Source: Phaeosaccion multiseriatum
Lineage: Eukaryota > Protista > Ochrophyta, other classes
Assembly: GCA_965112735.1 (NCBI GenBank)
Contig: OZ218957.1
Coordinates: forward strand, 124,001-188,000
Direction: 5' to 3'
DNA: 64,000 bases
In this document: positions 10,606-45,095 of the stretch, in pieces
Layout: each line of letters opens with the position of its first letter
Position numbering within the stretch: position 1 is the first letter of the stretch
The notes under the pieces: generated by a model
The model's input: the letters and a program-made list of their open reading frames with translations, nothing else
Told to the model about the DNA's origin: nothing
Databases searched by the model: none
Program-made: the position numbers and the translations under genes

Positions 10606-21371
<10,766 letters not shown>

Positions 21372-22377: not shown

Positions 22378-25300
22378 ATGAAGATAAGGCAGCTGCAGCT
22401 GCTAACCATGCTTTGCGCCCAGGGATGGTTCGCAGCTCTCGTCCAGGCACAATGTAAGAGACAGAAGCAGCAATGGCGCATGTGTTGGGCGTGGGGGTGA
22501 GTGCGAGCATGTGTTGAGATCGAGACACAGGCGAAAGGAGAACATGTGAGGGTGAATCGATCCATCATGTAGCGTGCCCGCAGAAGCACCCACCACACAC
22601 CCACAAGCGTACCCTAACTGATGCCAGCCGCACGTTTCGCTTCATCCCACGCCTCTCCCTCAACAGCACCCCCGCCCACGCCCCCCCCTGGCACGGTAAG
22701 CAAGGCCAGCCTCGTTTTATGTATTTGTTGCCTTGCAGTCAACCGCGTCGCTCCCATCTCTTCCTCTTTGCTCATCACAGCAGCCACCTTTATCACCAAC
22801 TGCTGTTACTGCTGCTGTATCACCACCTGCTGTTACTGCTGCTGTATCACCAACTGCTGTTACTGCTGCTGTATCACCACCTGCTGCTGCTCGGCGCTTG
22901 TGATTCCCACCCACCCATACCTCACCACGGCCCCTTCCACTGCCATCTATAACCCTCAGCCCTCTCGCCCCCTCGTGCCTCTCTCTCTCGTCCTCACACG
23001 GGCCCCTCCCCTCCCCTCAGGAGCCCGCAGCTCCCCCATCATGCGCAGAGAAAGACGAGGTTTGCAGGCCGAACTCGATTTTCTATGACGACTGCTGCCC
23101 GGGGCTGGAGTGTAGAAGTGATTTTGACATCTTGAACTTGACCACCCTGAGAACCAGCTCCTCCCGCCAGGGCTACGCATACACCTGCATAGTGAGTGTG
23201 TGTGTGCGTGTGTGCGTGTGTGCGTGTGTGCATGCGAAGATCCAGACACCGCGGCTGTATGACCAACTGCTGCTGTTGCTGCTGCTCCTGTTGCTGGTTT
23301 AGGGTTAGGAAATACCCCTCCCCTCCTCGAGGGGGGTCGGCCGCACCCACCCATACACCTCACCACGGCCCCTTCCACTGCCATCTTACCCTCAACCCTC
23401 TCGCCCGCTCTGTTCCTCTGTGCTCCTCGTGCCTCTCTCGCCCTTGAGGACCCCTTGGAGACCCCGGCACCGGCACCGGTAAGTAAAGGTGGAGTACCAA
23501 ACATACATTTTCATCAACATGTGTATTTGTTTATGTATATTTATGTATGTATGTGTGTGTGACTACGGGCATGGCAATCCATGGGTGGCTCATCAGCGGC
23601 ACCACCCCACCCCCACCCACCCAGTCTCTGCGTCTGTTGGAGATGTTCCATCTGGACTCTTGTGTACCCGCCTCGAATGCCCTCTCGCTGTCTCTTATTC
23701 TTATCCTCACTGCCGGCCACAGGAACCCACGCCAGTCCCCACTCCGCCCCCTACACCTGTCCCGACAACACCCGTTCCAACACCGGTGCGTACGGGAGTG
23801 CTTAACCTTGTCGCTCTCAGCGTCTCCCTCTTTGCTCACTTCAACACCTGCACCTGTGCCTCACCTCTTCTTCCGCCCGTCCTTCCCTTCAGGCGCCTTC
23901 GTGTCAAGCAGATGCGGACGCCTTCCTGAGCATGACTGACCAGGAGCTGTTCGACATGCAAGACTCCGACAACAGGATTGGCGAATACTGCTACAACCGA
24001 CAAATCTCTAGCAGCTCTGCTGCCTGCAACTACTACGTCCTGGCGGTACCGAGCGCCACTCATTCCGGCTGGCCCCGCACCACCCCAGGCGACGCAGGGA
24101 CCGGCTGTGTGTATGAGGGTGACGGGGGCCCGACCAGGTGCTTCTATGAGGACGCAGATTACGATCTCACCGAGGAGGAACGCGACTCCATGTGCACGCA
24201 GGACGTCGTGGCCAATGCGGCGGCTCAACTGCGTCATGCCATCACGAATGGAGCTTGCTGTGACGCGACTGAGGTATGTATGCATGTATGTATGTATGTA
24301 TGTATGAATGTTTGTGACCACGGGCAGGGATGGCAATCTATGGGTGTACATACGTGGACGGATGGTGGGCAGCTCATCAGCGGCACCACCCACCCAGTCT
24401 CTGCGTCTGTTGGGGATGTTCCATCTGGACTCTTGTGTACCGCCTCTAATACCCTCTCGCCCTATCCTCCCCTCCTCTTTCTGCTTCCTACCCTCACTGC
24501 CGGCCACAGGAACCCACGCCAGACCCCACTCCTGCTCCAACACCAGTACGTACCGGAGTGCTTAATCAGCATGGCCCCTTCCACTGCCATCCATAACCCT
24601 CAACCCTCTCGCCCCCTCTCTTCCTCTGTGCTCCTCGTGCCTCTCTCTCTCGTCCTCACACGGGCCCCTCCCCTCCCCTCAGGTGCCCGCAGCTCCCCCA
24701 TCATGCGCAGAGAAAAACGAGATTTGCAGGCCGAACTCGAGGTTCTACGACGACTGCTGCCCCGGGCTGGAGTGTCAGTTTCGTATTGTGAGGACCCCCT
24801 TGTATTACAGCAGCTCCTCCGCCTTGGCCTACTCATACGACTGCATAGTGAGTGTGTGTGTGTGTGCGTGTGTGCATGCGAAGATCCGGACACCGCGGCT
24901 GTATGACCAACTGCTGCTGCTGCTGCTCCTGTTGCTGGTTTAGGGTTAGGAAATACCCCTCCCCTCCTCGAGGGGGGTCGGCCGCAGCCACCCATATACC
25001 TCACCATGGCCCCTTCCACTGCCATCTAACCCTCAACCGTCTCGCCCCCTCTCTTCCTCTGTGCTCCTCGTGCCTCTCCCGCCCTTCAGGACCCCTTGGA
25101 GACCCCGGCACCGTCACCGGCACCGGTAAGTAAAGGTCACTAAAATGTATATTTATGTATGTGTGTGTGACTACGGGCAGGGATGGCAATCTATGGGTGT
25201 ACGTACGTAGACGGATGGCTCACACCCCACCAGCCCAGTCTCTGCGTCTGTTGGAGATGTTCCATCTGGACTCTTGTCGAATGCCCTCTCGCTCTCTCTT

Positions 25301-28300
25301 TTTCTTACCCTCACTACCGGCCCCTCCAACACCGGTACACACGGAAGTGCTTAACCTTCTTGTCTCTCTCAGAGAGTCCCTCTTTGCTCACTTCAACACC
25401 TGCACCTGTGCCCCACCCCTTCTTCCGCCCGTCCTCCCCTTCAGGCGCCTTCGTGTCAAGCAGATGCGGACGCCTTCCTGAGCATGACTGACCAGGAGCT
25501 GTTCGCCACGCGCATGATTGGCGACTACTGCTACAACCGAAACCTCAGGACCAGAGGAAATGCTTCCTGCAACTACTATGTCCTGGCGGTAGCGAGCGCC
25601 ACTCATTCCGGCTGGCCTCGCACCACAGACGACACAGGGACCGGCTGTGTGTATGAGGGTGACGGGGGCCCGACCACGTGCTTCTATGAGGACGCAGATT
25701 ACGATCTCACTGATGCGGAACGCAGCTCCATGTGCACGCAGGACGTCGTGGCCAATGCGGCGGCTCAACTGCGTCATGCCATCACGAATGGAGCTTGCTG
25801 TGACGCGACTGAGGTATGTATGCATGTATGTATGCATGTATGAATGTTTGTGACCACGGGCAGGGATGGCAATCTATGGGTGTAATCCGTGGGCAGCTCA
25901 TCAGCGGCACCACCCACCCAGTCTCTGCGTCTGTTGGGGACGTTCCATCTGGACTCTTGTGTACCCGCCTCGAATGCCCTCTCGCCGTCTCTTATTCTTA
26001 TCCTCACTGCCGGCCACAGGAACCCACGCCAGTCCCCACTCCTGCCCCTACAATGGTCTCCACCACGCTAGACCCCACTCCTGCCCCTACAATGGTTTCC
26101 ACCACGCTAGACCCCACTCCTGCCCCTACACCTGTCCCGACAACACCCGCTCCAACGCCCGCTCCAACACCCGTACGTACCGGATGGCTTAATCAGCACG
26201 GCCCCTTCCACTGCCATCTAACCATCAGCCCTCTCGCCCGCTCTGTTCCTCTGTGCTCCTCGTGCCTCTCTCGCCCTTCAGGAGCCGACGCTCGAGCCCA
26301 CGCCCTCCCCGACACCGGTACCAACAGGGACGCCAACAGCCACCCCCACAGCGACAACCACGGAAGCACCGACTCAAGCGCCCACTCTGGCTCCAACGGC
26401 CGCACCAACTGCAGCGCCGACGCTAGCCCCAACTCTGGCCCCGACTCAGGTGCTAACCCTAAGTGTCTTGATTGTCTGCCTCTCCTCTCTGCTCCTCTTT
26501 TCTAACCCTAGCCCACCCTTGTGTTCTCAGGCCCCAACGGCAACACCAACTGCAGCGCCGACTCGAGCTCCAACTACAGCACCCACGGAAGCCCCGGTAG
26601 CGGAAACGGAACCGCCAACTGTGGCCCCAACAGTGGCCCCAACAGTAGCACCAACAGCGATACCAACAGACACCCCCACAGCGACACCCACGGAAGCCCC
26701 GGTAGCGGAGACGGAACCGCCAACTGTGGCCCCAACAGTAGCACCAACAGGTACACCAACGGACACTCCCACAGCGACGCCCACGGAAGCGCCGGTAGCG
26801 GAAACGGAACCACCAACTGCGGCCCCAACAGTAGCACCGACAGGGACACCAACGGACACCCCCACAGCGACGCCCACGGAAGCGCCGGTAGCGGAAACGG
26901 AACCACCAACTGCGGCCCCAACAGTAGCACCGACAGGTACGCCCACAGAGGCGCCATCCGGAACCCCCACGGCATCGCCCACAGAAGCACCGATAGAGGC
27001 TTCTGCTCCTTCACCTGTTCCATCGACTCTCACCTCTCCTCCCACACCAGCCCCCATCCCTCTCACCCCTCCTCCCACACTGGCCCCCATCCCTCTCACT
27101 CCTCCTCCCACACCAGCCCTTCTCACTCCTCCTCCCACACCGGCCCCCATCCCCCTCACCCCTCCTCCCACACCAGCCCCCATCCCTCTCACCTCTCCTC
27201 CTACCCTACCTCCCACACCGGCCCCCACCCCTCTCACTCCTTCTCCCACACCGGCCCCCGCTCCAATCATTCTCACCACTCCCCCTATCGATCCGCCGAC
27301 TCCCAGCCCCGCACTACCCCCTAGCTTACCTTCGTTACCACCTCCCACTTCACCCCCTTCGTCGCCACCCACCCCTCCCCCGGTTGCTGAAGACACCGAT
27401 CCGCCTGTAGCTGTGGTGACACCTGCTCCTGTTATCGAGACATCACCTCCAACTGCGACGGACGCACCTGTGGCTGCGACTCTTCCGCCAACAGCGACAC
27501 CAACAGCACCTCCAACGCCAGCACCAATTCCAGGCACGGCTGCACCCACGTCCCCTCCAACGTCCCCTCCAACGTCCCCTCCCACGCCTTCTCCCATTCT
27601 TCTCACCTCTCCACCCACACCGGCCCCCATCCCTCTCACTCCTTCTCCCACACCGGCCCCCATCCCTCTAATCCCTCCTCCCACCTTCCCTCCCACACCA
27701 GCCCCCATCCTTCTCACTCCTCCTCCCACATCGGCCCCCATCACTCTCACCCCTCCTCCCACACCACCTCCCACACCAGCCCCCATCCCTCCTCCCACCC
27801 TAACTCCCACACCGGCCCCCATCCCTCTAATCCCTCCTCCCACCTTCCCTCCCACACCGGCCCCCATCCTTCTCACCCCTCCTCCCACACTACCTCCCAC
27901 ACCGGCCCCCATCCCTCTAATCCCTCCTCCCACCCCACCTCCCACACCGACCCCCATCCTTCTCACCCCTCCTCCCACACCGGCCCCCATCCCTCTCACT
28001 CCTTCTCCCACACCGGCCCCCATCCCTCTAATCCCTCCTCCCACCCTACCTCCCACACCGGCCCCCATCCCTCTAATCCCTCCTCCCACCCCACCTCCCA
28101 CACCGGCCCCCATCCTTCTCACCCCTCCTCCCACACCAGCCCCCATCCCTCTCACTCCTTCTCCCACACCGGCCCCCATCCTTCTCACCCCTCCTTCCAC
28201 CTTCCCTCCCACACCGGCCCCCATCCTTCTCACCCCTCCTCCCACACTACCTCCCACACCAGCCCCCATCCCTCCTCCCACCCTACCTCCCACATCGGCC

Positions 28301-31300
28301 CCCATCCCTCTCACCCCTCCTCCCACCCCACCTCCCACACCGGCCCCCATCCTTCTCACCCCTCCTTCCACCTTCCCTCCCACACCGGCCCCCATCCTTC
28401 TCACCCCTCCTCCCACACTACCTCCCACACCGGCCCCCATCCCTCCTCCCACCCTACCTCCCACACCGGCCCCCATCCTTCTCACCCCTCCTCCCACACT
28501 ACCTCCCACACCAGCCCCCATCCTTCTCACCCCTCCTTCCACCTTCCCTCCCACACCGGCCCCCATCCTTCTCACCCCTCCTCCCACACTACCTCCCACA
28601 CCGGCCCCCATCCTTCTAATCCCTCCTGCCACCCTACCTCCCACACCGGCCCCCATCCTTCTCACCCCTCCTTCCACCTTCCCTCCCACACCGGCCCCCA
28701 TCCTTCTCACCCCTCCTCCCACACTACCTCCCACACCAGCCCCCATCCCTCCTCCCACCCTACCTCTCACACCGGCCCCCATCCTTCTCACCCCTCCTCC
28801 CACACCAGCCCCCATCCCTCTCACTCCTTCTCCCACACCGGCCCCCATTCCTCTCACTCCTTCTCCCACACCGGCCCCCATCCTTCTCACCCCTCCTTCC
28901 ACCTTCCCTCCCACACCGGCCCCCATCCTTCTCACCCCTCCTCCCACACTACCTCCCACACCAGCCCCCATCCCTCCTCCCACCCTACCTCCCACATCGG
29001 CCCCCATCCCTCTCACCCCTCCTCCCACCCCACCTCCCACACCGGCCCCCATCCTTCTCACCCCTCCTTCCACCTTCCCTCCCACACCGGCCCCCATCCT
29101 TCTCACCCCTCCTCCCACACTACCTCCCACACCAGCCCCCATCCCTCCTCCCACCCTACCTCCCACACCGGCCCCCATCCCTCTCACTCCTTCTTCCACC
29201 CTCCCTCCCACACCGGCCCCCATCCCTCTCACCCCTCCTCCCGCCCCACCTCCCACACCGGCCCCCATCCCTCTCACTCCTTCTTCCACACCGGCCCCCA
29301 TCCTTCTCACCCCTCCTTCCACCTTCCCTCCCACACCGGCCCCCATCCTTCTCACCCCTCCTCCCACCCTACCTCCCACACCGGCCCCCATCCTTCTAAT
29401 CCCTCCTGCCACCCCACCTCCCACACCGGCCCCCATCCCTCTAATCCCTCCTTCCACCTCTCCTCCCACACCAGCCCCCATCCCTCTCACCCCTCCTCCC
29501 ACACCGGCCCCCATTCCTCTCACTCCTCCTCCCACACCGGCCCCCGCTCCAATCATTCTCACCACTCCCCCTATCGATCCGCCGACTCCCAGCCCCGCAC
29601 TACCCCCTAGCTTACCTTCGTTACCACCTCCCACTTCACCCCCTTCGTCGCCACCCACCCCTCCCCCGGTTGCTGAAGACACCGATCCGCCTGTAGCTGT
29701 GGTGACACCTGCTCCTGTTATCGAGACATCACCTCCAACTGCGACGGACGCACCTGTGGCTGCGACCCTTCCGCCAACAGCGACACCAACAGCACCTCCA
29801 ACGCCAGCACCAATTCCAGGCACGGCTGCACCCACGTCCCCTCCAACGTCCCCTCCAACGTCCTCTCCCACGCCCTCTCCCATTCTTCTCACCTCTCCAC
29901 CCACACCGGCCCCCATCCCTCTCACTCCTTCTCCCACACCGGCCCCCATCTCTCTAATCCCTCCTCCCACCTTCCCTCCCACACCGGCCCCCATCCCTCT
30001 CACTCCTTCTCCCACACCGGCCCCCATCCCTCTCACCCCTCCTTCTCCCACCTTCCCTCCCACACCGGCCCCCATCCCTCTCACTCCTTCTCCCACACCA
30101 GCCCCCATCCCTCTCACCTCTCCTCCTACCCTACCTCCCACACCAGCCCCCACCCCTCTCACTCCTTCTCCCACACCGGCCCCCATCCCTCTCACCCCTC
30201 CTTCTCCCACCTTCCTTCCCACACCGGCCCCCACCCCTCTCACTCCTTCTCCCACACCGGGCCCCATCCCTCTCACCCCTCCTTCCACCTTCCCTCCCAC
30301 ACCGGCCCCCACCCCTCTCACTCCTTCTCCCACACCGGCCCCCACCCCTCTCGAGACTGCTCCTCCTTCACCCACTCCATCGACACCTGAGACTGCTCCT
30401 CCTTCTCCCACTCCATCGACACCTGAGACTGCTCCTCCTTCTCCTGCTCCATCGACACCTGAGACTGCTCCTCCTTCACCCACTCCGTCGACACCGGAGA
30501 CTGCTCCTCCTTCTCCCACTCCATCGACACCTGAGACTGCTCCTCCTTCTCCTGCTCCTGCTCCCTTTGCAGAGACAGGGACGCCTCTGGGGACCCCTGC
30601 CCCTGCGGATGGGACAGAAGCTCCTCCTCCGTCTGATGGGACAGAAGCTCCTTCTCCGTCTGATGGTGGCGTGACTGAAGCTCCTTCTCCGGCTGATCGT
30701 GGCGTGACTGAAGCCCCTGCGGGCTGCACGGAGAAGACAGATTCCATCACTTCGCCAGATGGTGAGTGAGTGAGTGATTGAGTCTCTCTCTCTCTGTGTA
30801 TGTGTCCCCTGTCTGCCTACCTGCCTGGCTGCCTGCTTGCCTTCCTCCTTCCTCACGCTGTCACCCCCCCCCCCCCCCCCCCCCATCCACTGCCATCCCG
30901 TGCCGCCCCGTGTGCCTGTGAATGAATGTGAATGTGCAACACGTGTGGTTGTGGCACTCGCTCACAGAGGAGGACGAGGGCTTTATGTACGGCTGCTGCG
31001 GAACGGTGCTGGACCCGTCCACCGGCGAAGTGGTGCCCGTGAGGAGCAGCACCACCCTCATCCTCCGCAAGGTGCAGTTCTTAGACGCCGCTCAGACGGA
31101 GTACGACGTCTTGGCCGAGTATGACGCCACCGCTGCGGGTGTTTTCGGGTGTGCGGTGGATGCGGAGGTGGACAACGACGGCAACTTAGTCGTGCTGGGC
31201 GTGTCGGTGCCTGAGCCCGGGGTGCCCACTGTGGCGCCGACTGTGGAGACGACAACAGATGGAGAAGACGGAGGTGGAAGGCGGCGACGAGGCCTTCAGA

Positions 31301-34300
31301 CGGACGAAACAGACGAGACGGACGAAACAGACGAAACGGACGGAACCAAGACGTTCCTGCTGTACGTCAACCCTTCCAACTTCTCTGACACTTGCGAGGT
31401 AGAAGGCAGCGAAGGGGGCGGAGCGGGCGGAGGGGTCAGTATCGTGCAGCAGAGGGACGACGAACTCCTGGTGCGTGTCGTGTACAGCGACGCCCCAGCG
31501 CAAAACATCACTATAACTAAGGGTGGTTGTGCGGGCACGAGTTCCATTCCAACAGTAGACCTACGTGTGGACAAGCTCTACTTAGACGGACACGACTCCG
31601 GGATGGTCGTGGGCTCCGTGGTGGCGGTGGGGGTGGTACTGGTGGCCCTGGCGGGCGTGTTTGGCGTCGTGGGAGCTACGGCCACCTCGAGAGGGCCGCA
31701 GCCGTCAGCGAAGAGCCCCAGCTCGGCGAGGTGAGTGTGTGTGCGTGCGTGTGAGTATATGTGTATGTGGTGTGTGTGTGCGTGTGTGTGCCTACCTGTT
31801 TGTGCTTGTGTGTGCGCATGTGCGTTCTTCCTGACCCTGCCCCTACCTCCCGTCCTCTTGCCTATCCTTCCCCTCTCCCCATATGCTTCTAACTCCTCCC
31901 CTCCCTTCAGTGCCAAGGTGATGATTCAGCACGTGCAGGGCCTTGCCCTCCTCGCCTTCGCCGTGCCCGCAGAGAGGAGGTTCTCCGAGTTCGCCAGGGC
32001 CCTCTCCTGGACCAATCTGTGGTGGACAGTGGACTTCCTGGACGACAACGAGGACGCGGGGATTGGAGCGGATGATGTGGATGATGGGTTGAGGGATGTC
32101 TCTGGGGAAGGGGAGGACTCGTGCGGCGGGCAAGAGACCGTGAAACGCTTCGTCGGAAACCTCCTCCTGGCGGGGGGGCTCGTGCTCATCATGGTGAGTG
32201 ATTGGTGTCAGGACAAAGAGAGAGAGAGAGAGAGAGTCAGAACAGGAGCCTAACCCTCCTCCTCCTCGTCCTCTTCGTCCTAGGTGCTGCTGAACCTCGT
32301 GCTGGGCAGTTACATTGAGGCCAAATGGCACGCTCGAGAGAGGGCCAAGCTCGAATGGCGAGTGGCGCAGAGGGTGGGCATCACACGCGGGGCTGACATT
32401 CGAATGCACCTGACCCCCAGCCCCAAGGCGGCGTCGAGGGAGGGAGACCCCACCGTTCCCTCCCCCCCTCGATCAGAGTCGCTCATCCACAGGCCCTCAG
32501 TCACCTCCCTCCCGGCAGCGAGGTCTGAGTCCCTCTCCCTATCCTCTCGAGCGGCGTCAGCGGCCCTCGGAGTGGCATATAGGGATGAGCTCCGAGCGGC
32601 GGCGGAGTGGGACAGGGCGCAATGGAAGGAAGACAAGGTAAGGTGATCCTGTGTGAACGAACCTGACCCTGACCCTGACCCTGACCCTTACCCTTACCCT
32701 TACTCTGACGGTCCTGACCCACACCCACACCCTGACCCTGACCCTGATCCGTAACCCCACCCTCAGGCCAATCGGGGGCTGCCTGCCAAGGTGCCAAGCT
32801 TCTACCGGGTCAGTGGCGTCATCGAGCAGCCGCAAAATCATCATCTGCAGCAGCAGTATCAGCAGCAGCATGGTCGCGGGCGTGGGATTGAGGCGTGTGA
32901 GAGCAACAGCAGTGTGGGTGGCATGGCGGACCCAATCGTGTTCAACACGGCGGCGTTTGGTGGGCAACCTGAACCGCCCGAGACCCCCAAGTTCTGGACG
33001 TACTACCCGCACGTGCTGCTCGTGGTGATGGTGTTTATCTTGGAGGGCACTTCGCTGGCAGAGATGGGGGTAATGACCTCAAACTGCGACTGGGCGGTGG
33101 CCGTGGGGGTGCTGACCTTCCTCCTGCTGCCCTGCCTCATTGCACTGTACTGTGGGGGGTTTGTGGTAAAGCTGCTCCGGCAGAAGAGCGACTCCGCCCA
33201 CCAACTCGTGTTTGTGCGGTACGAAGACGAAGAGGAGGAGGGGGAGGGGAACGACGCTGCAGAGGGCGACGGCTCTTCTCGCCAAGTGAAGAACCAAAAG
33301 GTGGGGGTGTGGGAAAAGGTGAAGAGGTCCATGTCGGCAACGTTCTTCGAGGAGGAGCGCTTCTTGTCCTGCTTCGACACGGGTGAGTGAGTGAGTCCGT
33401 GGGGGTGTGTGAGTGAGTGAGGCAGTCAGTGGAGGTGTGTGAGTGAGTGAGTCAGTGAAGGTGTGTGAGTGAGTGAGTCAGTGGGGGTGTGTCTGAGTGA
33501 AGAACGGAGATGGAGAGGTGTGGAGAGAAGCTTTTTCGCGGCTGTGTGAAAAAGAAAAGGAACGTGCTAATATGACACCCCTCCTCTCTCCCTGCCGCCC
33601 CTCAGGAGCTTGGATGACGGTGTACTGCAATGAACCGGGACTCCTCGCGGCCGCTTCCGAGCAGCACCAACATAATCTACGCCGTGAGCAAAGGGAGGGA
33701 AGCGCTTTGGAAGTGTCGGCCCAGCGCGCTCTGAAGGTCAGAAAGAGGGTGGCAGAGGCAGAGCTTCTGCGCATCGGCAACGAGCCCATATACGCGGACT
33801 TCACAGATACCGGCCTGTACTACGCACTCTTCCTCTACGCCGAGATCCTAGCCCTGGCATCTGTGGCGGCCTTCGTGCCCGACGAGACGACGCAGCTCAT
33901 CATCTTCCTTGCTTTCACGGCTGTGAACTTGCTGTTCGTGGTTTTTGTTCGGCCGTTCTGTAACTCGGAGCTGAACCTGGTGGCCGGTGTGGGCGCGGGT
34001 GTGAACCTGTTGATGCTGGCGCTGCTGCTGACCATGCAGTTCGACGGTTACGCGGGGGGCGAGTTCGAGAGGAGGGCCACAAACGCCATCTTCGTCATGC
34101 AGGTGGGTGTCAAGTCAGTACAGTACCTAGTGTCAGGCAGGCCTGGTGTCAGTCAGTGCCTTGTCTTAATCAGTCTCTGGTTTCAGTCAGTACCTGGTGT
34201 CAGTACAGTACCTGGTGTCACCCAGGTTGTCGGTGGGCTTTTCGGTGAGGAGGGAGGTGAAGGCCATGGTGCTGCTGCCTGAGTAGTGCAGGGAAGAGAA

Positions 34301-35109
34301 GAGTGGGGGCTCTGTCCCTGACTGTGCCCCCCTCCCTTCCCTTCCCCTCTCCCCTCCCTTCCCCTCCCTTCCCGTCCCCTCTCTCCTTCCCTTCCCTCTG
34401 TCTGCAGATCGTGTTCCTCGTGACGGTTTCGCTGCCCCTGTACTTCGACGCCCTCCTGGGGCTGTGGCAGGCCGCCCTCTCGGCCTGGAGGTCCGACGAC
34501 GACGAGGACGAGGCAGGAGTATCAATGACGGCCAAGAGCGGTAAGGACGTTGAGACGGTAGACAATCACGACGTGGCGACCCTCCGGCAGCTGCGCAGGG
34601 AGGACAGGCAGGTGTTCCTGAACAAGCGGACGAGGGAGAACTGGAAGGCAGTCTACGGCAAGATGTTTAGGAAAAACTTCCTCCACTTCAAGGAGTGCCT
34701 CCGCTTGCCTCTGAAGAACCCGAGCCTGGCCACGCGTGGAGAGGGAGCCGAGATGGCAGCAGATGCCTCCGCGGTAGGAAGCCTCATGAGCGAGTTGGAC
34801 CCTAGGCCTCTAAGCAGCATCGGCAGCCTCAGCAGCAGCGGGAGCGTCAGCAGCAGCACCAAGAGCAGCAAGTTCATAGAGAACAGCGAAGTGCAATACG
34901 ACTTTGGCGGTTCGATTCGCTCGAATGGAAGCATCGATTCGCAGGCCTGGCCGGTGTACCCGAGGGGGGCGGGGGAGGGGGACGTGCCAAACCCGAACCC
35001 TACCGCCGCCGCTGGAGCCGCTGCTGCCCCTGGAGTGACGGGGCAGGACATCCAACCTGCTTCAGGAGCGGTCACCTGGGAAAGCCTCATCACCGACCGC
35101 CGGGTGTAG
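22378..35109 (+). CDS. Modular cell-surface receptor A: signal peptide, [knottin-like + 8-Cys domain] x2, ~1500-aa Pro/Thr stalk, juxtamembrane domain, ~9-TM FLC/Pkd2 (fungal TRP-like) domain. Exons 22378-22453, 22667-22695, 23021-23191, 23449-23478, 23723-23785, 23893-24273, 24510-24545, 24683-24847, 25090-25125, 25445-25813, 26020-26172, 26282-26449, 26531-30761, 30968-31730, 31911-32193, 32284-32637, 32767-33382, 33606-34102, 34408-35109
   Basis: Signal peptide [24 protein letters not shown]; frame-consistent GT-AG exons; membrane motifs [11 protein letters not shown]...[10 protein letters not shown] and Q.IIFL...[13 protein letters not shown] typical of the PF06011-like family. Confidence 0.8.
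26531..30600 (+). repeat. Coding minisatellite array ([10 protein letters not shown]-type, PVAETEPPT-type and TPETAPPSP-type units) with an internal ~450-bp near-perfect duplication (~27245-27690 vs ~29530-29990)
   Basis: Direct reading of DNA and of ORF 26450..30769. Confidence 0.95.
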
Positions 35110-35248
35110 CGGTTGAAGCGGGTGTAGCGGGGCGGTGTGTGAACCCTGCGGTGTGTGTGTGTGTCCCGGGGAGGACGTGTGTGTGTGTTTCCCTCCCGGG
35201 TGTGTGTGTGTGTGTGTCCCCAGGGTGTGTGTGTGTGTGTGTATGTAT

Positions 35249-35645
35249 TCAGAGCAGCGTCGGCTCCTTCGCCTCGGCAGCGCTCTCCGACTCGCCTCAA
35301 ACGACGAGCAGCATCATCAGCACAGTAGTAGGAGCAGCAGTATCAGCAGCAGTGGTCACCCCGGGCCCACAATCGGCATCAGCGATGGGACCGACCGGCC
35401 AGCACCACTTCTACCCGCCCGCACTCGAGCGTGCCCGGGCCCGTGCTTACGCTCCTGCTGCTGACCTGAGCAGCTCGAGTACTGGTGCCGCTGCTGCCAG
35501 CGCTACTGGGCGCCACTTACCGACCACCTTTTCCATTCGGAGGGCGGCGAGGAGAGCACACGTCAAGCGGCCGGTTACCCACTCCAGCCCCACTCGGACT
35601 AGAGGACGGCAGCAGCGGCAGCGGGGAGGGTGCCCGAATAGCTGG
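35249..35645 (+). pseudogene. Degenerate duplicated fragment of the last exon of the cNMP gene (homologous to ~20493-21200)
   Basis: Shared blocks cggctccttcgcctcgg...ccgactcgcctca...acgacgagcagcatca and gctgctgacctgagcagctcga.tactggtgccgctgctgccag, with deletions and frameshifts. Confidence 0.8.
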
Positions 35646-35783
35646 TAAGGTCAGCGACCAGCCCATATCATTTTTGGAGCGATGGGACTAGAGTGAGATA
35701 GAGATAGAGGTGTATAGGTAGAGAGATGGTTCTTGTTGGTAGGGGGAGGAATGTTCGTGTTACGTTGCTTGGAAGTGTCGTAC

Positions 35784-35903
35784 TCGACCCCTGACACGCT
35801 ATCCGCTGTCCGCTATCCGCTATCGGCCGATAGCGCGCTGTCGGGGGCGGGGGGGGGGGATAGCGCGCTATCGCGAATGTGGGCGATAGCGCGTCAGGGG
35901 TCG
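35784..35903. mobile_element. ~120-bp inverted-repeat element (MITE-like); arms TCGACCCCTGACRCGCTATC / GATAGCGCGTCAGGGGTCGA
   Basis: 20-bp inverted repeats with one mismatch and internal GCTATC/GATAGC repeats; a related sequence lies at 58713-58806. Confidence 0.55.
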
Positions 35904-36886
35904 ATATCGTACTGTAGCAGTTTTTCACTTGGGAGTTGAAAGTTGAAAGTTTTGCTGCAACACAGCCTGTTTCCCAATCCCCGCTCCTCACCTCACGGCA
36001 CCGCTCCACGGGCCCTTCTCGAATCATTCGGATCGTTCTTGGCCCCTCCTCGCGGAAATCTGATTGAGGATCATGATCCGACGGCGACAAGAAAATTGCT
36101 CCCGTTGCTGGTGGATCGCCACTAAAAAAAGTGAAAAAGCGACTGCCCAAGCCCCCCTTGAAGCAATGAGGGCAACTTCAGAGCCTCACATACAGAAGGG
36201 CATATCTCTGAGAGGAAGGAGTGAGAGAAGGAACAGCAGCAACCACAGAGGAGGAGAGCAAAGTAGCAGAGAAGGGCAGAACGAAGAGGGGAGGGTGGGC
36301 GATGGCGATGGATGGCAATGGAGCAGCACGGGGTTAGGGCAAGAAGGATTGTTTCCCTGTTGCCGGCACCGAAAAGCTTTAAGATACCCCAGCTGCTCCC
36401 CCTGTTCGTTGTGGCCTTGTCTTCTGCGGCCACCATGATCTCTTTCTTCAAGCTGCACTCACTTGGCAGTGCGGTTGTGGTGCCTCTGGTCATTGCGGCA
36501 TCCTCATCACGTGGGGATACGCCGCTGCCACTCGTTGTGGCGGTGGGCATGCTGGCGCTAGCCGGGGCAGCACTGCTGGGCGTCGTGGCTGCTGTGCGCG
36601 ACCCAAAGAAGGTGGGGCTGTGTGGAATGCCTGACACTCTGACCTGGTTGCGCCTCTCTCTCCGTAGCTCGGGCCTTGCTTGACGCGGTTGTTGCACCCC
36701 TCCCACCCGCTATCATTGCATGGCCCCACATGCCATTCCTCTCTTGTTCGCGGCCAACAGGCTTGGCTGTGCTCCTCCTAACTCTCCGCTGACCTTCCTC
36801 TTTTCCTCTCGGCCGCACCTCGTCCTCAGGGGCCTGGGTCTGCTCTGGAGGATGACTGCAGTTCTCCGTTCCACATTAGTAGAAAG

Positions 36887-39800
36887 ATGAAGGTGCAGCT
36901 GCTCTCCATGCTTTGTGCCTTACTACTACCTGCGCATCTCGTCCAGGGACAAGGTAAGAGAGTACTAAGATGGCAACCCATGGCGGACAAGCCAAGGAGC
37001 GCATTGAACAGGAACGGAAGGGTACAGTGGGAGTGGAGGAGGAGGAGGAGGAGTAGTAGTAGTAGCAGCAGCAGCAGCAGCGATGGTCCGTGTGCTTCGT
37101 CGGTGTTTCACTCTGTTTTGGGGAGCGAGGGGCGGGGGTGGAATTCGAATGCAAGTCTAGCAGACTATGAGGTGAGGGTGGATCGATCCATCATGTAGCG
37201 TGCCCGCAGGAGCACCCACCACACACGCACAAGCGTACCCTAACTGATGCCAGCCCCACGTTTCGCTTCATGGCACGCCTTCCCCACACCGGCACCGGCA
37301 CCGGCACCCACACAATAGGGAGTCCGACACCCACCCCAGCCGCGGTAAGGAATGGTACAAGCAGTTGGTGGTACAAGCAGTTGCATTGATTCTAGCTACT
37401 TTCTTGCACCTTCCTTGTAATGGCTTCTCACACTCGTCCACGTCCCTGCGTATTACTTGTGTATTTCGTTGGCTCATGCCGTATGCCATCTGTGCCCTAC
37501 CTGCTCCTCCCGTCCCTACCTGCAGGCAGCTACATGTGCAATAATCGACAACTTCCTTTACTTGTCGGACGAGGAGCTGTTCAACGTGTTCGAAGGTCCC
37601 GACAGCAGGATTGGCGACTACTGCCATATCCGGTACATCCCAGGCCGCGTGGCTGCTTGCAACTACTATGTCGTCGCTGCCCCGAGCACCATCACTGACT
37701 TCGTCGGCTGGCCCCGTACTAGCCTTGGCGACGCAGGGACCGGCTGTGTGTATGAGGGTGTGGAGGGCCCGACCAAGTGCTTCGTCAACGAGCCGAGCTA
37801 CGATCTCTCGCCAGAGCAGCGCTTGGACATGTGCTCGGAAGATGTCGTGGGTAATGCCGCGGCTCAGTTGCGCCATGCCATTAACAGTGGGGCGTGCTGT
37901 GCCTCGACTTACGTACGTGCATGCATCTTTGTATGTTTGTGTGTATGTACGTGTGTATGTGCGTGTATGTGTGTATGTGTGTGTATGTGTGTTTGTGTGC
38001 ATGTGTGTATGTGTACGTGCCTGTGTCCACGGCGTCCACTCAGCTAACGTCCGTGTGTGTGTGTGTGTGCTTCGACTCAAGCACCAAGTGTCAGAGCTGC
38101 TGTGGGGCTTCGGACGGCACTGCTCAACGGCGCCACGGCCACCATTCCTATGCCCATCCACTGCCATCTGTGCCCCTCTTGACTAGGGCCTTTACCGCCC
38201 CCCCTCTGTCTCTTGCTCTCCTCGTGCTTCCTCACTACCTCAGACGCCTCCGCCCACCCCCCCACCCGCGCCCACAGCTGAGGTGTGTGGGGTGATCGGC
38301 AGCAGGTGCGAGAATACCTTTGACACAGGCTGCTGCCCGGGGCTGGAGTGCATGAATACCGATTTTGATGTCTCCAGTGATAACGAGGGGGACGATTTCT
38401 TTCTTCATCACTGCCAGGTAGGTGTGTGTGTGCGGAGCCGCAGACCCCGAGGATGTATCACCAACTGCTGCTGCTGTATCACCAACTGCTGTTGCTGCTC
38501 GGCGCTTATGAGTCCCACCCACCCATACCTCACCACGGCCCCTTCCACTGCCATCTAACCCTCAACCCTCTCGCCCCCTCTCTTCCTCTGTGCTCCTCGT
38601 GCCTCTCTTCCCGACTCACACTGGACCTTCAGGAGCCCACACCGACGGATGCGTGTAGGGACTTGGACAGTTTCTGCCGCGGTCAGAACGACTGCTGCCC
38701 GGGGCTGGAGTGCGTGCCTTTGCCGGGGGATGCTTTCTATTTTAGTTACGGTGATTTGGACGCCTACGGGTACTTTCATAATCACATCTGCGAGGTAGGT
38801 GTGTGTGAGTGTGTGTGTGTGTGCGGAGCCGCAGACACCGAGGATGTATCAACAACTGCTGGCGTTTGTGATTCCCACCCACCCATACCTCACCACGCCC
38901 CCTTCCACAGCCATCTATTAGCTCAACCCTCTCGCCCCCTCTCTTCCTCTGTGCTCCTCGTGCCTCTCTCTCTCTGCCTCACACAGGCCCCTCAGGAGCC
39001 CACACCGACGGATGCGTGTGGGGTCTTGGACAGTTTCTGCGACCCTCAGAACGACTGCTGCACGGGGCTGGAGTGCGTGCCTTTGCCGGGAAATTATTAC
39101 CATACTGGTAGTGATTTTGGTGATTTCGAGGGGTTATACTACGGGGAATACTACTATTACTTTAGTCATATCTGCCAGGTGTGTGTGTGTGCGGAGCCGC
39201 AGACACAGAGGATGTATCACCAACTGCTGCTGCTGCTACTGATGCTTGTGATTCCCACCCACCCATACCTCACCACGGCCCCTTCCACTGCCATCTATAA
39301 GCCTCAACCCTCTCGCCCCCTCTCTTCCTCTGTGCTCCTCGTGCCTCTCTCTCTCCAACTCACACTGGACCTTCAGGAGCCCACACCGACGGATGCGTGT
39401 GGGGACTTGGACAGTTTCTGCCGCGGTCAGGACGACTGCTGCACGGGGCTGGAGTGCGTGCCTTTGCCGGGGGATGATTACTATTTTAGTTATGGTGATT
39501 TGGACGGCTACGGGTGCTGTAATCATATGTGCCAGGTGTGTGTGTGTGTGAGTGGGTGTGTGTGGATGATGCTCGCCTTGGGCTGATGGGCCCCTTCTTC
39601 CTCTTAAATGTAGTGTAACTCACTCACTCACCTACACACTCATTCACTCGCTCGTTCGCGCACACAATCACTCACTCACGCACTCACTCGCTCGCTCGCT
39701 CGCTGACTCACTTCACTCACTCACTCACTCCACTCACTCACTCCCTCACTCACTCCGCCTTGAAGTGGTGATTCACGGGTTCGAGCTCTGCTGCCACTCC

Positions 39801-42800
39801 TCCTCCTCTCTCTCTCATCCTGTTCTGTTACGTCACGTCTTCGCCTTCTCCCCTCTTCCCCCCCTTCGCCAGGCGCCATCCGGAACCCCCACGGCAGCGC
39901 CCACAGAAGCACCGACAGAGACTGCTGCTCCTTCACTTGCCCCTTCGACACCAGCGACTGCTGCTCCTTCACCTGCCCCTTCGACACCAGCGACTGCTGC
40001 TCCTTCACCTGCCCCTTCGACACCAGCGACTGCTGCTCCTTCGCCTGCCCCTTTGACACCAGCGACTGCTGCTCCTTCGCCTGCCCCTTTGACACCAGCG
40101 ACTGCTGCTCCTTCACCTGCCCCTTCGACACCAGCGACTGCTGCTCCTTCACCTGCCCCTTCGACACCAGCGACTGCTGCTCCTTCGCCTGCCCCTTTGA
40201 CACCAGCGACTGCTGCTCCTTCGCCTGCCCCTTTGACACCAGCGACTGCTGCTCCTTCACCTGCCCCTTCGACACCAGCGACTGCTGCTCCTTCGCCTGC
40301 CCCTTTGACACCAGCGACTGCTGCTCCTTCACCTGCCCCTTCGACACCAGCGACTGCTGCTCCTTCGCCTGCCCCTTTGACACCAGCGACTGCTGCTCCT
40401 TCGCCTGCCCCTTTGACACCAGCGACTGCTGCTCCTTCACCTGCCCCTTCGACACCAGCGACTGCTGCTCCTTCACCTGCCCCTTCGACACCAGCGACTG
40501 CTGCTCCTTCACCTGCCCCTTCGACACCAGCGACTGCTGCTCCTTCACCTGCAGAGGCATTCGACGCTCCAGCGGTGAACCCATCGAACCCCTCTCTCCC
40601 GCGATCACTCGCGCCGGCTACGGACCCCTCCGACACAGGAGACGCTTCTCCGAGTGATGGTGGCGTGACAGAAACTCATTCTGCTTCTGACGCTACTCAA
40701 ACGTATTACTATCATCATTCTTCTTATTCTTCTCATGATTTAGAGGGGGGTACAACGGGGCATGCAAACTGCAGGACAGATTCCGTCACTTCGCCAGACG
40801 GTGAGTGAGTGAGTGAGTGAGTGAGTGCGTGAGCCGGTTCGCTCTCTCAAAGTCTCTGTCTCTGTGTGTGCGTGTCGTGCCTTCCTGTCTGCCTGCCCGC
40901 CTGGCCCCCTCTCTTCCCTCCTCACGCCCTCACCGCTTCCCTTCCGATCCACTGCCATCCTGTGCCGCCCCGTGTGCCTGTGAATGAATGTGAATGTGCA
41001 ACACGTGTGGTTGTGGCACTCACAGGCGAGGACTTTGTGTACGGCTGCTGCGGAACGGTGCTGGACCCGTCCACCGGCGAAGTGGTGCCCGTGAGGAGCA
41101 GCACCACCCTCATCCTCCTCAAGGTGCAGTTCCTTGACACCATTCGGACGGAGTACACCGTCTTGGCCGAGTATGACGCCGCCGCTGCGGGGGTGAGCGG
41201 GTGTGCGGTGGATGTGGAGGTGGACAACGACGGCAACTTGCTCGTGCTGGGCGTGTCTCAGCGGCTGGCGGTCCTCGGGCCTGAACCCGTGCAACCGAAC
41301 GTGGAGACGACAGCAGACGGAGGCCGCGGACTTGAAAGGTTGTTGGAAGGCCTTCAGACGGTCGACGGAGCGGACATGGACAGCGGAAGCGAGACGTTCC
41401 TGCTGTACGTCAACCCTTCCAACTTCGCTGACCTCTGCGGCGTGGTACAAGGCATCGGAGGGGGCGGAGCGGGCCGAGGGGTCAGTATCGTGCGGCAGAC
41501 GGTCGACGAGCTCGTGGTGCGTGTCCACTACATCGACGGCCCCTCGCAGGACATCAGTATGCTTGACGAAGCATCTTGTGCGGGGTATGCGACGCAGCTG
41601 GGCATAGGAACTGACGTGCCGGTGGACAAGCTCTACATAGACGGGCACGACTCCGGAGTATTCGTGAGCACCTTTCTGGCGGTGGGTGTGGTACTGGTGG
41701 CCCTGGCGGGCGTGTTTGGTGTCGTGGGGGCTACGTCCACCTCGAGAGGGCCGCAGCCGTCAGCGAAGAGCCCCAGCTCGGCGAGGTGAGTGTGTGTGCG
41801 TGTGTGTGTGTGTGAGGTGTGTGTGTGTGTATGTGTGTGTATGTGTGTGTGTGTGTGAGGTGTGTGTGTGTGTGTGTGTGCGTGTCTACGTTTGCGTGTG
41901 TGTGCGTGCGTGTGCGTGTGCGTGTGAGAGGTGTGTGAGGTGTATGTGAGTGTGTTTGTGGGTGCGTGCGTGTCTACGTCTACGTGTGTGTGCGTGCGTG
42001 TCTACTGTGCAGAGGTGTGCGTGTGTGCGCATGTGCGTTCTTCCTGACCCTGCCCCTACCTCCCGTCCTCTTGCCTATCCTTCCCCTCTCCCCATATGCT
42101 TCTAACCCCTCCCCTCCCTTCAGTGCCAAGGTGATGATTCAGCACGTGCAGGGCCTTGCTCTCCTCGCCTTCGCCGTGCCCGCAGAGAGGAGATTCTCCG
42201 ACTTCGCCAGGGCCCTCTCCTGGACCAATCTGTGGTGGACAGTGGACTTCCTGGACAACAACGAGGAGGAGGGGATTGCAACGGATGGGTCGAGGCAGTT
42301 GTCTGGGGAAGGGGAGGACTCGTGCGGCGGGCAAGAGACCGTGAAACGCTTCGTCGGAAACCTCCTCCTGGCGGGGGGGCTCGTGCTCATCATGGTGAGT
42401 GATTGGTGTCAGGACAAAGAGAGAGAGAGAGAGAGAGAGAGTCAGAACAGGAGCCTAACCCTCCTCCTCCTTGTCCTCTTCGTCCTAGGTGCTGCTGAAC
42501 CTCGTGCTGGGCAGTTACATTGAGGCCAAATGGCAGGCCCGAGAGAAGGCCAAGCTCGAATGGCGAGTGGCACAGAGGGTGGGCATCACACGCGGGGCTG
42601 ACATTCGAATGCACCTGACCCCCAGCCCCAAGGCGGCGTCAAGGAAGGGAGACCCCGCCCTCCCCTCCCCCCCCCGACCAGAGTCGCTCAAGGGCAGGCC
42701 CTCAGTGACCGCCCTCCCGGCAGCGAGGTCTGAGTCCCTCTCACTTTCCTCTCGAGCGGCGTCAGCGGCCCTCGGAGTGGCGTATAGGGATGAGCTCCGA

Positions 42801-45095
42801 GCGGCGGCGGAGTGGGACAGGGCGCAGTGGAAGGAAGACAAGGTAAGGTGATCCTGTGTGAACGAACCTGACCCTGACCCTGACCCTTACCCTTACTCTG
42901 ACGGTCCTGACCCACACCCACACCCTAACCCTAAGCGTGACCCTGACCCTGACCCTGACCCATAACCCAACCCTCAGGCCAATCGGGGGCTGCCTGCCAA
43001 GGTGCCAAGCTTCTACCGGGTCAGTGGCGTCATCGAGCAGCCGCAAAATCATCATCTGCAGCAGCATTGGAGCCGCGGGCGTGGGATTGAGGCGTGTGAG
43101 AGCAACAGCAGTGTGGGTGGCATGGCGGACCCAATCGTGTTCAACACGACGGCGTTTGATGGGTACCCTGAACCGCCCGAGACCCCCAAGTTCTGGACGT
43201 ACTACCCGCACGTGCTGCTCGTGGTGATGGTGTTTATCTTGGAGGGCACTTCGCTGGCAGAGATGGGGGTAATGACCTCAAACTGCGACTGGGCGGTGGC
43301 CGTGGGGGTGCTGACCTTCCTCCTGCTGCCCTGCCTCATTGCGCTGTACTGCGGGGGGTTTGTGGTGAAGCTGCTCCGGCAGAAGAGCGACTCCGCCCAC
43401 CAACTCGTGTTTGTGCGGTACGAAGACGAAGAGGAGGAGGAGGAGGGGAACGACGCTGCAGATGGCGACGGCTCTTCTCGCCAAGTGAAGAACCAAAAGG
43501 TGGGGGTGTGGGAAAAGGTGAAGAGGTCCATGTCGGCAACGTTCTTCGAGGAGGAGCGCTTCTTGTCCTGCTTCGACACGGGTGAGTGAGTGAGTCAGTG
43601 GGGGTGTGTGAGTGAGTGAGGCAGTCAGTGGAGGTGTGTGAGTGAGTGAGTCAGTGAAGGTGTGTGAGTGAGTGAGTCAGTGGGGGTGTGTCTGAGTGAA
43701 GAACGGAGATGGAGAGGTGTGGAGAGAAGCTTTTTCGCGGCTGTGTGAAAAAGAAAAGGAACGTGCTAATATGACACCCCTCCTCTCTCCCTGCCGCCCC
43801 TCAGGAGCTTGGATGACGGTGTACTGCAATGAACCGGGACTCCTCGCGGCCGCTTCCGAGCAGCACCAACATAATCTACGCCGTGAGCAAAGGGAGGGAA
43901 GCGCTTTGGAAGTGTCGGCCCAGCGCGCTCTGAAGGTCAGAAAGAGGGTGGCAGAGGCAGAGCTTCTGCGCATCGGCAACGAGCCCATATACGCGGACTT
44001 CACAGATACCGGCCTGTACTACGCACTCTTCCTCTACGTCGAGATCCTAGCCCTGGCATCTGTGGCGGCCTTCGTGCCCGACGAGACGACGCAGCTCATC
44101 ATCTTCCTTGCTTTCACGGCTGTGAACTTGCTGTTCGTGGTGATGCTTCGGCCGTTCTGTAACTCGGAGCTGAACCTGGTGGCCGGTGTGGGCGCGGGCG
44201 TGAACCTGTTGATGCTGGCGCTGCTGCTGACCATGCAGTTCGACGGTTACGCGGGGGGCGAGTTCGAGAGGAGGGGCACAAACGCCATCTACGTCATGCA
44301 GGTGGGTGTCAAGTCAGTACAGTACCTAGTGTCAGGCAGGCCTGGTGTCAGTCAGTGCCTTGTCTTGATCATTGCCTGGTTTCAGTCAGTGCCTGGTGTC
44401 AGTCAGTGCCTGGCGTCAGCCCGGTGGGTGGGCTGGGGTGGGGTGGGCTTTTCGGCGAGGATGGGGGTAAGGGCCCGGAAACCCCCTCCCCCTCACCTCG
44501 TGCTGAGCCTGAGTAGTGCGAAGAAGAGAGAGAAACTCTGTCCCTGACATTGCCCCCTCCCCTCTCCCCTCTCCCCTCTCCCCTCTGTCTGCAGGTCGTG
44601 TTCCTCGTGACGGTTTCGCTGCCCCTGTACTTCGACGCCCTCCTGGGGCTGTGGCAGGCCGCCCTCTCGGCCTGGAGGTCCGACGACGACGAGGACGAGG
44701 CAGGAGTAACCACATCCATGAAGACCAAGGGCGGTAAGGACGTTGACACGGTAGACAATCACGACGTGGCGACCCTCCGGCAGCTGCGCAGGGAGGACAG
44801 GCAGGTGTTCCTGAACACGCGGACGAGGGAGAACTGGAAGGCAGTCTACGGCAAGATGTTGAGGAAGAACTTCCGCCACTTTAGGGAGTGCCTGCGCTTG
44901 CCTCTGAAGAACCCGAGCCTGGCCACGCGTGGAGAGGGAGCCGAGATGGCAGCAGATGCCTCCGCGGTAGGCTCGCTTGGAAGCCTTAGGAGCGAGTTGG
45001 GCGCAGAAGAGACTGGGCAGGACACCCGAGCTGCTCCACAAGAGAACACCTGGGAGAACCTCCTCTCCGGCCGCCGGTTTAGCGGGGTGGCGTGA
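36887..45095 (+). CDS. Modular cell-surface receptor B (paralog of A): signal peptide, one 8-Cys domain, four knottin-like modules, ~300-aa Pro/Thr/Ala stalk, juxtamembrane domain, ~9-TM FLC/Pkd2-like domain. Ectodomain exons 36887-36953, 37318-37343, 37526-37912, 38244-38417, 38633-38794, 38996-39178, 39377-39535, 39873-40800, then six exons from 41026 to 45095
   Basis: Signal peptide MKVQLLSMLCALLLPAHLVQG; the 3' half has the same exon structure as A and near-identical TM exons. Confidence 0.8.
39921..40552 (+). repeat. 33-bp coding tandem repeat (TAAPSPAP[S/L]TPA), about 19 copies
   Basis: Direct reading. Confidence 0.95.

Follow-up and report, generated by a model that had tools for sequence, protein, structure and literature searches.

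The DNA analysed here (the window) is a 64,000-nucleotide stretch from the ochrophyte alga Phaeosaccion multiseriatum (assembly GCA_965112735.1, contig OZ218957.1, positions 124,001 to 188,000 of the forward strand), and coordinates refer to the window unless another contig is named. The window has a GC content of ~0.59 and consists of intron-rich eukaryotic DNA. It contains six short exons, designated K1 to K6, that are predicted to encode six-cysteine modules resembling inhibitor cystine knot (ICK) miniproteins, or knottins, each with a long and divergent last loop. The exons supply the head modules of a tandem pair of paralogous genes, designated gene A (starting at 22378) and gene B (starting at 36887).

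Knottin-like exons and the genes that contain them

23021-23191, + strand: K1 exon, gene A knottin-like module; 57 codons, AG/GT bounds; loop after Cys V at 23114-23191
24683-24847, + strand: K2 exon, gene A knottin-like module; 55 codons, AG/GT bounds; loop at 24776-24847
38244-38417, + strand: K3 exon, gene B knottin-like module; 58 codons, AG/GT bounds; loop at 38352-38417
38633-38794, + strand: K4 exon, gene B knottin-like module; 54 codons; loop at 38714-38794
38996-39178, + strand: K5 exon, gene B, with the longest loop (32 residues, Tyr-rich); 61 codons; loop at 39077-39178
39377-39535, + strand: K6 exon, gene B, with two additional adjacent Cys in the loop; 53 codons, 8 Cys; loop at 39458-39535

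All six exons were preceded by AG, were followed by GT, and had lengths that were multiples of three, and they were accordingly read from the sequence as phase 0/0. The encoded modules shared the framework C-x6-C-x5..9-CC-[PT]GLE-C-xN-C (6/6 exons), with last loops of 24, 22, 20, 25, 32, and 24 residues in K1 to K6, respectively. A six-frame scan of the window returned six matches to this framework, all of which were on the plus strand and corresponded to the K exons, compared to a mean of 0.01 match (maximum, 1) in 100 local shuffles. Minus-strand stop-free stretches were present at the K locus, but at the level expected throughout for the composition of the window.

The loops were compositionally distinct from their surroundings. 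Pooled K loops contained 15% Tyr, 12% Asp, 10% Ser, 9.5% Gly, and 8% Phe, with no Lys, and GC content was 0.41 to 0.51 in loop DNA, 0.57 to 0.65 in scaffold DNA, and 0.52 to 0.64 in flanking introns. The extra Cys pair of K6 differed from K4 by two single-base differences. The K5 loop contained the short direct repeats GTGATTT (twice) and ATACTAC (twice), as expected from slippage. An earlier note on this DNA had described six exons with this spacing and these last-loop lengths, and exon reading and the six-frame scan reproduced all of them exactly; its descriptions of an additional CC pair in the exon at 39377, of AT-richer loop DNA, and of Tyr/Gly/Asp-rich loops were likewise accurate.

The introns between K4 and K5 (38795-38995, 201 nucleotides [nt]) and between K5 and K6 (39179-39376, 198 nt) were multiples of three without a stop in the exon frame, and a single 386-codon open frame (38426-39586) spanned K4, K5, and K6, so that intron retention there would keep the frame. 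The intron between K3 and K4 (215 nt) and the introns following K1 and K2 did not have this property.

Comparison of the K modules to Pfam produced sub-threshold matches only, all of them to spider knottin families or Dickkopf_N. Toxin_12, Atracotoxin, and Toxin_22 were matched below threshold across the six modules, including Toxin_12 (PF07740) with K1 (E = 0.017) and K3 (E = 0.016). A profile of seven modules (K1 to K6 and one module from contig 13, described below), searched against all chain sequences in the Protein Data Bank (PDB), retrieved 26 matches, all of which were knottins, with the double-knot toxin Hi1a as the best (E = 4e-5). The closest clusters in an Atlas feature search of the modules were ICK clusters, a result at the level of a lead. 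In an AlphaFold model of K4 from the seven-row alignment, the predicted local distance difference test (pLDDT) score was 87 to 89 in the scaffold and below 50 at loop residues 31 to 40, the loop being disordered. Nearly all of the best 50 rows of a Foldseek search with this model were knottins, with E values that were not significant (E ≥ 0.45), and VIA-align superposed the model on ICK structures with Z scores of 3 to 4.1 and root mean square deviations of 1.1 to 2.0 Å over 29 to 37 residues, a Z of 4.1 being close to the maximum attainable with a core of ~35 residues.

The sequence profile, the language-model features, and the AlphaFold model all point to ICK miniproteins, in agreement with the ICK-like spacing noticed earlier, and the C-C-CC-C-C order with short loops 1 to 3, one of the defining features of knottins, was found in the six K exons and in the contig 13 module. 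In the KNOTTIN definition, the disulfides are I-IV, II-V, and III-VI, the last of which passes through the ring to form the knot (PMC5753296), and mussel MgCRP-I has a C-C-CC-C-C array with another disulfide topology (PMC4558851). Because pairing could not be read from the model and the array can pair otherwise (PMC4558851), the K modules are termed knottin-like rather than proven knottins.

Other features of genes A and B were as follows.

22378-22453, + strand: gene A exon 1, with a start codon, a signal-peptide-like hydrophobic N terminus, and a phase 1 end (read from sequence)
36887-36953, + strand: gene B exon 1, with a start codon, a signal-peptide-like N terminus, and a phase 1 end (read from sequence)
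23893-24273 and 25445-25813 (gene A) and 37526-37912 (gene B), + strand: 8-Cys domain exons, from alignment of the copies
26222-30766, + strand: Pro/Thr-rich mucin-like stalk of gene A, stop-free for ~1500 codons, with APT-type repeats
About 39900-40800, + strand: Pro/Thr-rich mucin-like stalk of gene B
31900-34280 (gene A) and about 42100-44480 (gene B), + strand: multipass membrane part, TRP/PF06011-like

Phase 0 is brought back by a Pro/Thr linker exon ahead of K1 in gene A (22667-22695) and by a short Pro/Thr exon in gene B (37319-37344). The order of modules in gene A was K1, Pro/Thr exons, an 8-Cys domain (23893-24273), K2, and a second 8-Cys copy (25445-25813), and that in gene B was a single 8-Cys exon (37526-37912) and then K3 to K6. 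No Pfam family matched the 8-Cys domain. Past the stalk, both genes continued into a juxtamembrane domain and then the multipass membrane part, which weakly matched Pfam TRP (PF06011) with an E value of 0.0018 and 17.6 bits versus a cut-off of 28.5 bits (profile positions 282 to 365). Other loci of the genome matched PF06011 around positions 276 to 397, two of them above the cut-off, and the membrane part had an Atlas feature score of 0.92 to PF06011 and DGF-1_C clusters.

Genome searches, which covered the 67-Mb assembly of 22 contigs (the window lying on contig 8), revealed a third paralogue on the minus strand of contig 13 (2380000-2389999; module exon, L009:1465-1581:-). Built on the same plan, it encodes a signal peptide, a single K module, a Pro/Thr mucin part, and a juxtamembrane domain resembling that of genes A and B, with a compact last loop of 11 residues. 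In the window, a TG-rich intron stretch followed the gene B 8-Cys exon (37933-38017), and very long microsatellite-like arrays lay just upstream of gene A (18148-21368 and 19745-20127), with tetranucleotide-type repeats of >1 kb and GAG/GGA-type triplet runs.

Divergence of loops, scaffolds, and introns

K1 and K2 lie within a 1.65-kb duplicated cassette. Between the two copies, mismatches were found at 11/329 positions of the flanking introns (3.3%) and 7/93 positions of the linker and scaffold (7.5%), compared to 32/72 positions of the loop (44%), which also contained a 6-nt indel (loop versus introns, Fisher test, P = 2e-18). For the first ~40 nt past the LEC codons, the two loops aligned no better than shuffled sequence (427/2000 shuffles). 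Compensated frameshifting was considered as the cause of the difference between the two loops and rejected, as the other frames contained stops and the central piece was no better than shuffled. These values bore out the earlier description of K1 and K2 as matching up to LEC and then diverging between similar introns. The more general claim that loops diverge faster than introns held for K1/K2 and for K4-K5 (loop, 21%; introns, 4 to 10%; scaffold, 8.6%; P = 0.004), with the loop excess in K4-K6 and K5-K6 not being significant. Of all parts of the module, the last loop changed most rapidly. As measured with a pairwise aligner, the loops of K4, K5, and K6 were 2- to 3-fold more diverged than the scaffold and intron. 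Indels were found in every loop pair compared.

Within the 1.65-kb cassette, the introns also contained divergent patches with indels, as did the 8-Cys exon, which had two such patches (23956-24040 versus 25508-25585 in the gene A copies) surrounded by near-identical sequence. Patchiness is therefore not peculiar to the knottin loop.

Comparison with the flanking DNA depends on the rate at which the introns themselves change. The type copy of the shared intron is the following.

38418-38632, + strand: K3|K4 intron

The intron upstream of K1 was about 9 to 11% diverged from that of K4 or K6, with a synonymous divergence (dS) in the scaffold of 1.27, and the downstream introns of K3 and K4 were 6% diverged, versus a scaffold dS of 0.63. 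Introns were thus up to ten times more alike than the synonymous sites of adjoining exons. Introns that are 6 to 11% diverged beside scaffolds with dS of 0.6 to 1.3 are unfit as a neutral yardstick, and their use as a baseline in the earlier note was not sustained, since they are too alike (10% versus a dS of 1.27; 6% versus a dS of 0.63).

Between gene A and gene B, the membrane halves (30785-34800 versus 40853-44990) were 96 to 100% identical, introns included, the juxtamembrane ectodomains were 73 to 88% identical, and the 8-Cys exons were ~75% identical (blastn, with 37933-38017 masked with N). This gradient of identity, together with the rearranged module order, indicates an old duplication with parts homogenized by interlocus gene conversion or unequal crossing-over. 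The flanks of the K loops were very probably homogenized by conversion, and their lower AT content fits GC-biased conversion. Models and cases of divergence islands that last under interlocus gene conversion have been described (PMC3924837, PMC3728101, bioRxiv 10.1101/2025.10.29.685298).

Copies of a 3' intron element were located at 22920, 23358, 24999, 26191, 38528, 38888, and 39268, ahead of the mucin exon and small Pro/Thr exons as well as K exons. A core motif of this element, CCC-N-TCCACTGCCATC, was found at 25 sites genome-wide, in other introns (≤2 mismatches), versus 0 sites for the reversed control, and in 2/8 inspected sites (L015 and L016) it was followed, at a distance of some tens of bases, by an apparent 3' splice site. 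The motif may be a splicing-related element of the organism, and its genome-wide recurrence suggests some constraint. An introner, that is, a genome-wide mobile intron family, was rejected, as full-length copies were confined to the K locus. A CA/CTCA-rich segment in the intron after K6 (39625-39683) was complementary to GT-runs at the very start of the introns after K3, K4, and K5 (38422-38434, 38801-38825, and 39181-39193); the complementary sequence is of low complexity, and its significance is therefore doubtful. RNA pairing of the docking/selector type was rejected for the same segments, with complementarity only at the microsatellite level.

Origin of the loop differences

The explanation that we favor, with a little more than even confidence, is that the K modules are germline exon-duplicated knottin-like heads with a permissive, indel-prone loop, the flanks of which were kept alike by concerted evolution. 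The six exons would encode ICK-type six-cysteine mini-domains in the germline as the outermost heads of two tandem cell-surface proteins, each predicted to consist of a signal peptide, knottin and 8-Cys modules on Pro/Thr linkers, a long Pro/Thr mucin stalk, and, beyond a juxtamembrane domain, a TRP (PF06011)-like multipass membrane part. The scaffold would be fixed by the cysteines and the CC-x-GLE-C core, and the segment that separates the fifth and sixth cysteines would form a structurally permissive surface loop that may have grown from about 11 residues, as in the contig 13 paralogue, to 20 to 32 residues. With selection on them relaxed or mildly diversifying, the loops would rapidly accumulate substitutions, indels, and short tandem duplications, and gene conversion or unequal crossing-over among the repeated phase 0 cassettes would leave them as islands of divergence. 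The sharp contrast between loop and flank would then result largely from shared introns and scaffold halves having been kept alike. The acidic, Tyr/Phe-rich loops could serve as faces contacting a ligand, wall, or matrix, and several heads per stalk with different loops could give a surface sensor or adhesin different fixed specificities. Loop diversity would be inherited rather than somatically generated. Ordinary homogenization of the copies in their flanks, with a loop under loose constraint between them, fits the data better than an antibody-like diversity system.

Several observations weigh against this explanation. Toxin_12 scores in five modules were 15.4 to 19.0 bits, versus a gathering cut-off of 21 bits, and K6 matched Atracotoxin only (16.4 versus 25 bits); a C-C-CC-C-C array alone does not guarantee a knot. 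The K1/K2 divergence island is ~70 nt long inside DNA that is 96 to 98% identical, so that pure conversion needs very short tracts or selection opposing homogenization of the loop, and the K1/K2 pair is fitted equally well by a recent duplication followed by a complex replacement mutation. Codon usage is a further point. In the gene B loops (K3 to K6, 38352-39535), the ratio of T- to C-ending codons was 47:36, versus 96:291 elsewhere among the exons of the locus (P = 6e-8), and no preference for T-ending codons was found in the gene A loops (GC content at third codon positions, 0.73 to 0.75); the favored model does not predict this NNT codon preference of gene B in detail. The binding function of the K loops and, from the sequence, the splicing and expression of the K exons are matters that we infer.

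Positive selection on the loop is possible. An account in which a recently duplicated cassette acquired adaptive replacements in a paratope-like loop, with the introns recording neutral divergence, is the strongest of the alternatives, but we consider it unlikely. Such an account is consistent with the narrowness of the divergence island, the Tyr/Asp/Gly/Ser-rich loops, and the two adjacent cysteines of K6, which were acquired together so that the number stays even. It is also consistent with a ratio of nonsynonymous to synonymous divergence (dN/dS, or omega) of 1.5 in the K1-K2 loop, with 25/29 nonsynonymous changes in confidently aligned codons (pooled omega, 1.7), and with 3 to 7 nonsynonymous and 0 synonymous differences in the K4/K5/K6 scaffolds. 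However, the pooled omega, which comes from few sites in a loop that cannot be aligned throughout, was not significantly greater than 1 (P = 0.23), a value at which noncysteine positions evolve approximately neutrally or somewhat faster. The other three of the four loop pairs had dN/dS below 1 (K4-K5, 0.58; K5-K6, 0.56; K4-K6, 0.77), and the diversifying selection proposed in the earlier note was not shown. Loop dS (0.15 to 0.58) was far above the divergence of the flanks and introns, with dN raised as well, and amino acid selection alone therefore falls short as an explanation. Introns at the K locus are not neutral clocks, and the genome contains a total of seven modules.

If the modules bound carbohydrate or wall material and were related to family 1 carbohydrate-binding modules (CBM1), the aromatic loop would be a sugar-binding face, with loop differences corresponding to different polysaccharide targets. 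The genome contains two CBM_1 genes with three tandem modules each (contig 3, 1611391-1614513, L010; contig 4, 4284131-4287232, L011). These triplets matched Pfam with an E value of 1.5e-23 (82.8 bits) and have the six-Cys variant C-x6-C-x9-CC-x4-C-x9-C, the spacing of which is that of the knottin-like modules; the module profile matched them weakly (E = 0.005 to 0.2). The K loops are aromatic-rich, and a Cys-rich head on a mucin stalk recalls the design of wall sensors such as yeast Wsc1 and Mid2. Against this, the K modules had no match to Pfam CBM_1 (PF00734) at E ≤ 1 and contained neither the QCGG nor the WYSxC signature, and no CBM1 structure was found in the best 50 fold matches. Sugar binding in the manner of a CBM is a live alternative role, and we rate the reading of the K modules as relatives of CBM1 as distinctly unlikely.

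It is improbable that the exons are nonfunctional, belonging to a decaying or never-expressed gene with frames open merely through GC-rich DNA. Long stop-free stretches were frequent on both strands here, the sequencing runs found were four DNA-like runs from one study with no RNA run, and a search of 1.84 billion representative proteins retrieved neither a product of this gene nor a close relative (best E = 4e-6). Nevertheless, 36/36 framework cysteines were kept in six copies despite 35 to 65% residue divergence, all splice sites and phases were intact, signal peptides were present, frameshifts or stops were found in none of the modules, and the contig 13 paralogue keeps the architecture.

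Similarly improbable is a dedicated process, either localized germline mutation or combinatorial or mutually exclusive use of K3 to K6, that diversified the loops and similar loop patches in the 8-Cys exons and in other Cys-repeat genes; if true, it would represent a small variable surface-receptor repertoire on a knottin scaffold in a unicellular alga. Programmed diversification in the strict sense, by targeted or templated loop mutation or with K3 to K6 as alternative or mutually exclusive cassette exons, is the least credible explanation: the symmetric phase 0 of the K exons would allow any subset in frame, a conserved intron element precedes each cassette, the 5' GT-runs are complementary to 39625-39683, and the T-ending codon bias of gene B may mirror a C-to-T-biased process, but the intron element also lies ahead of nonknottin exons, the complementarity is a low-complexity microsatellite, the K exons of gene A are interleaved with other modules, and the K1, K2, and K5 loops each matched only themselves in the 67-Mb genome, with no donor copies. 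With no donor archive for these loops and seven modules in the genome, the targeted diversification suggested in the earlier note is unsupported.

Occurrence of the module and comparison with known systems

The genome profile search retrieved seven modules in total (six K modules and the contig 13 module) in addition to the weak CBM_1 matches. Among the 1.84 billion representative proteins, only eight matched at E ≤ 1e-3 and none at E ≤ 1e-10, and the genuine ones among the eight were tandem ICK-like repeat proteins with short loops. In JGI metagenomes, 101 patterns matched, none of which was confirmed as a relative. At the sequence level, the knottin-like receptor family is lineage-restricted.

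The nearest of these proteins were from metagenomes or bacteria (P0001, P0003, P0005, and P0007; E = 4e-6 to 7e-4). They contain serial CC-x-GL-x-C modules that match Toxin_12 or Toxin_7, but their similarity to genes A and B is at the motif level, with last loops of 4 to 12 residues and without a mucin stalk or membrane domain. ICK toxins (Toxin_12/huwentoxin and the double-knot toxins Hi1a, DkTx, and Xt3a) share with the K modules the C-C-CC-C-C order, the x6/x5-9/0/x4 spacing, and the CC-x-GL-x-C core, and the double-knot toxins also share tandem modules. In contrast, the last loop is 4 to 13 residues in the toxins versus 20 to 32 residues here. The toxins are small processed secreted peptides, whereas the K modules are exon-encoded parts of a predicted giant algal mucin-stalked membrane protein, show no sign of toxicity, and miss the Pfam cut-offs.

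Conotoxins and mussel MgCRP-I resemble the K modules in having invariant cysteines amid rapidly changing sequence, conserved flanks, and the same Cys array, and significant positive selection has been reported for a hypervariable Cys-rich peptide family (P = 1.7e-8; PMC4558851). Those families are large and positively selected; here there are seven modules with one strongly variable loop, and omega is not significant. CBM1 is likewise a small disulfide-knotted module with an aromatic binding face, and the CBM_1 copies of this genome have the same six-Cys spacing, but the K modules lack a CBM_1 match and the signature motifs (QCGG and the aromatic Y/W-Y-x-Q-C).

In the membrane part, genes A and B are weakly similar to PF06011 proteins (fission yeast Pkd2 and the FLC family) and to trypanosome DGF-1, and a large extracellular N-terminal part is common to all of them. 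Pkd2, located in the plasma membrane, is a putative channel activated by stretch (PMC9727806). The match of genes A and B to the family is under the Pfam cut-off (17.6 versus 28.5 bits). We know of no description of knottin heads and a ~1500-residue mucin stalk in the PF06011 family.

Like the K locus, Dscam-type exon arrays consist of symmetric exons of similar sequence in tandem, accompanied by conserved intron elements; the loops of antibodies and variable lymphocyte receptors resemble the K loops in being rich in Tyr, Gly, Asp, and Ser. Unlike these systems, the K locus has a tiny repertoire, with no donor cassettes for the K1, K2, and K5 loops.

To our knowledge, knottins are almost exclusively small secreted toxins, inhibitors, and defense peptides from animals, plants, and fungi. 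The knottin-like module described here appears instead as a shuffled phase 0 exon unit in the ectodomain of giant algal mucin-stalked, TRP-like membrane proteins, and one of its loops is two to three times as long as usual. If expressed, these modules would widen the range of taxa in which the knottin fold occurs as well as the architectures that use it, and they would represent natural long-loop grafting on a knottin core, which is relevant to scaffold engineers. The K locus also provides a clean case for separating homogenized introns from accelerated exons where exons outpace introns.

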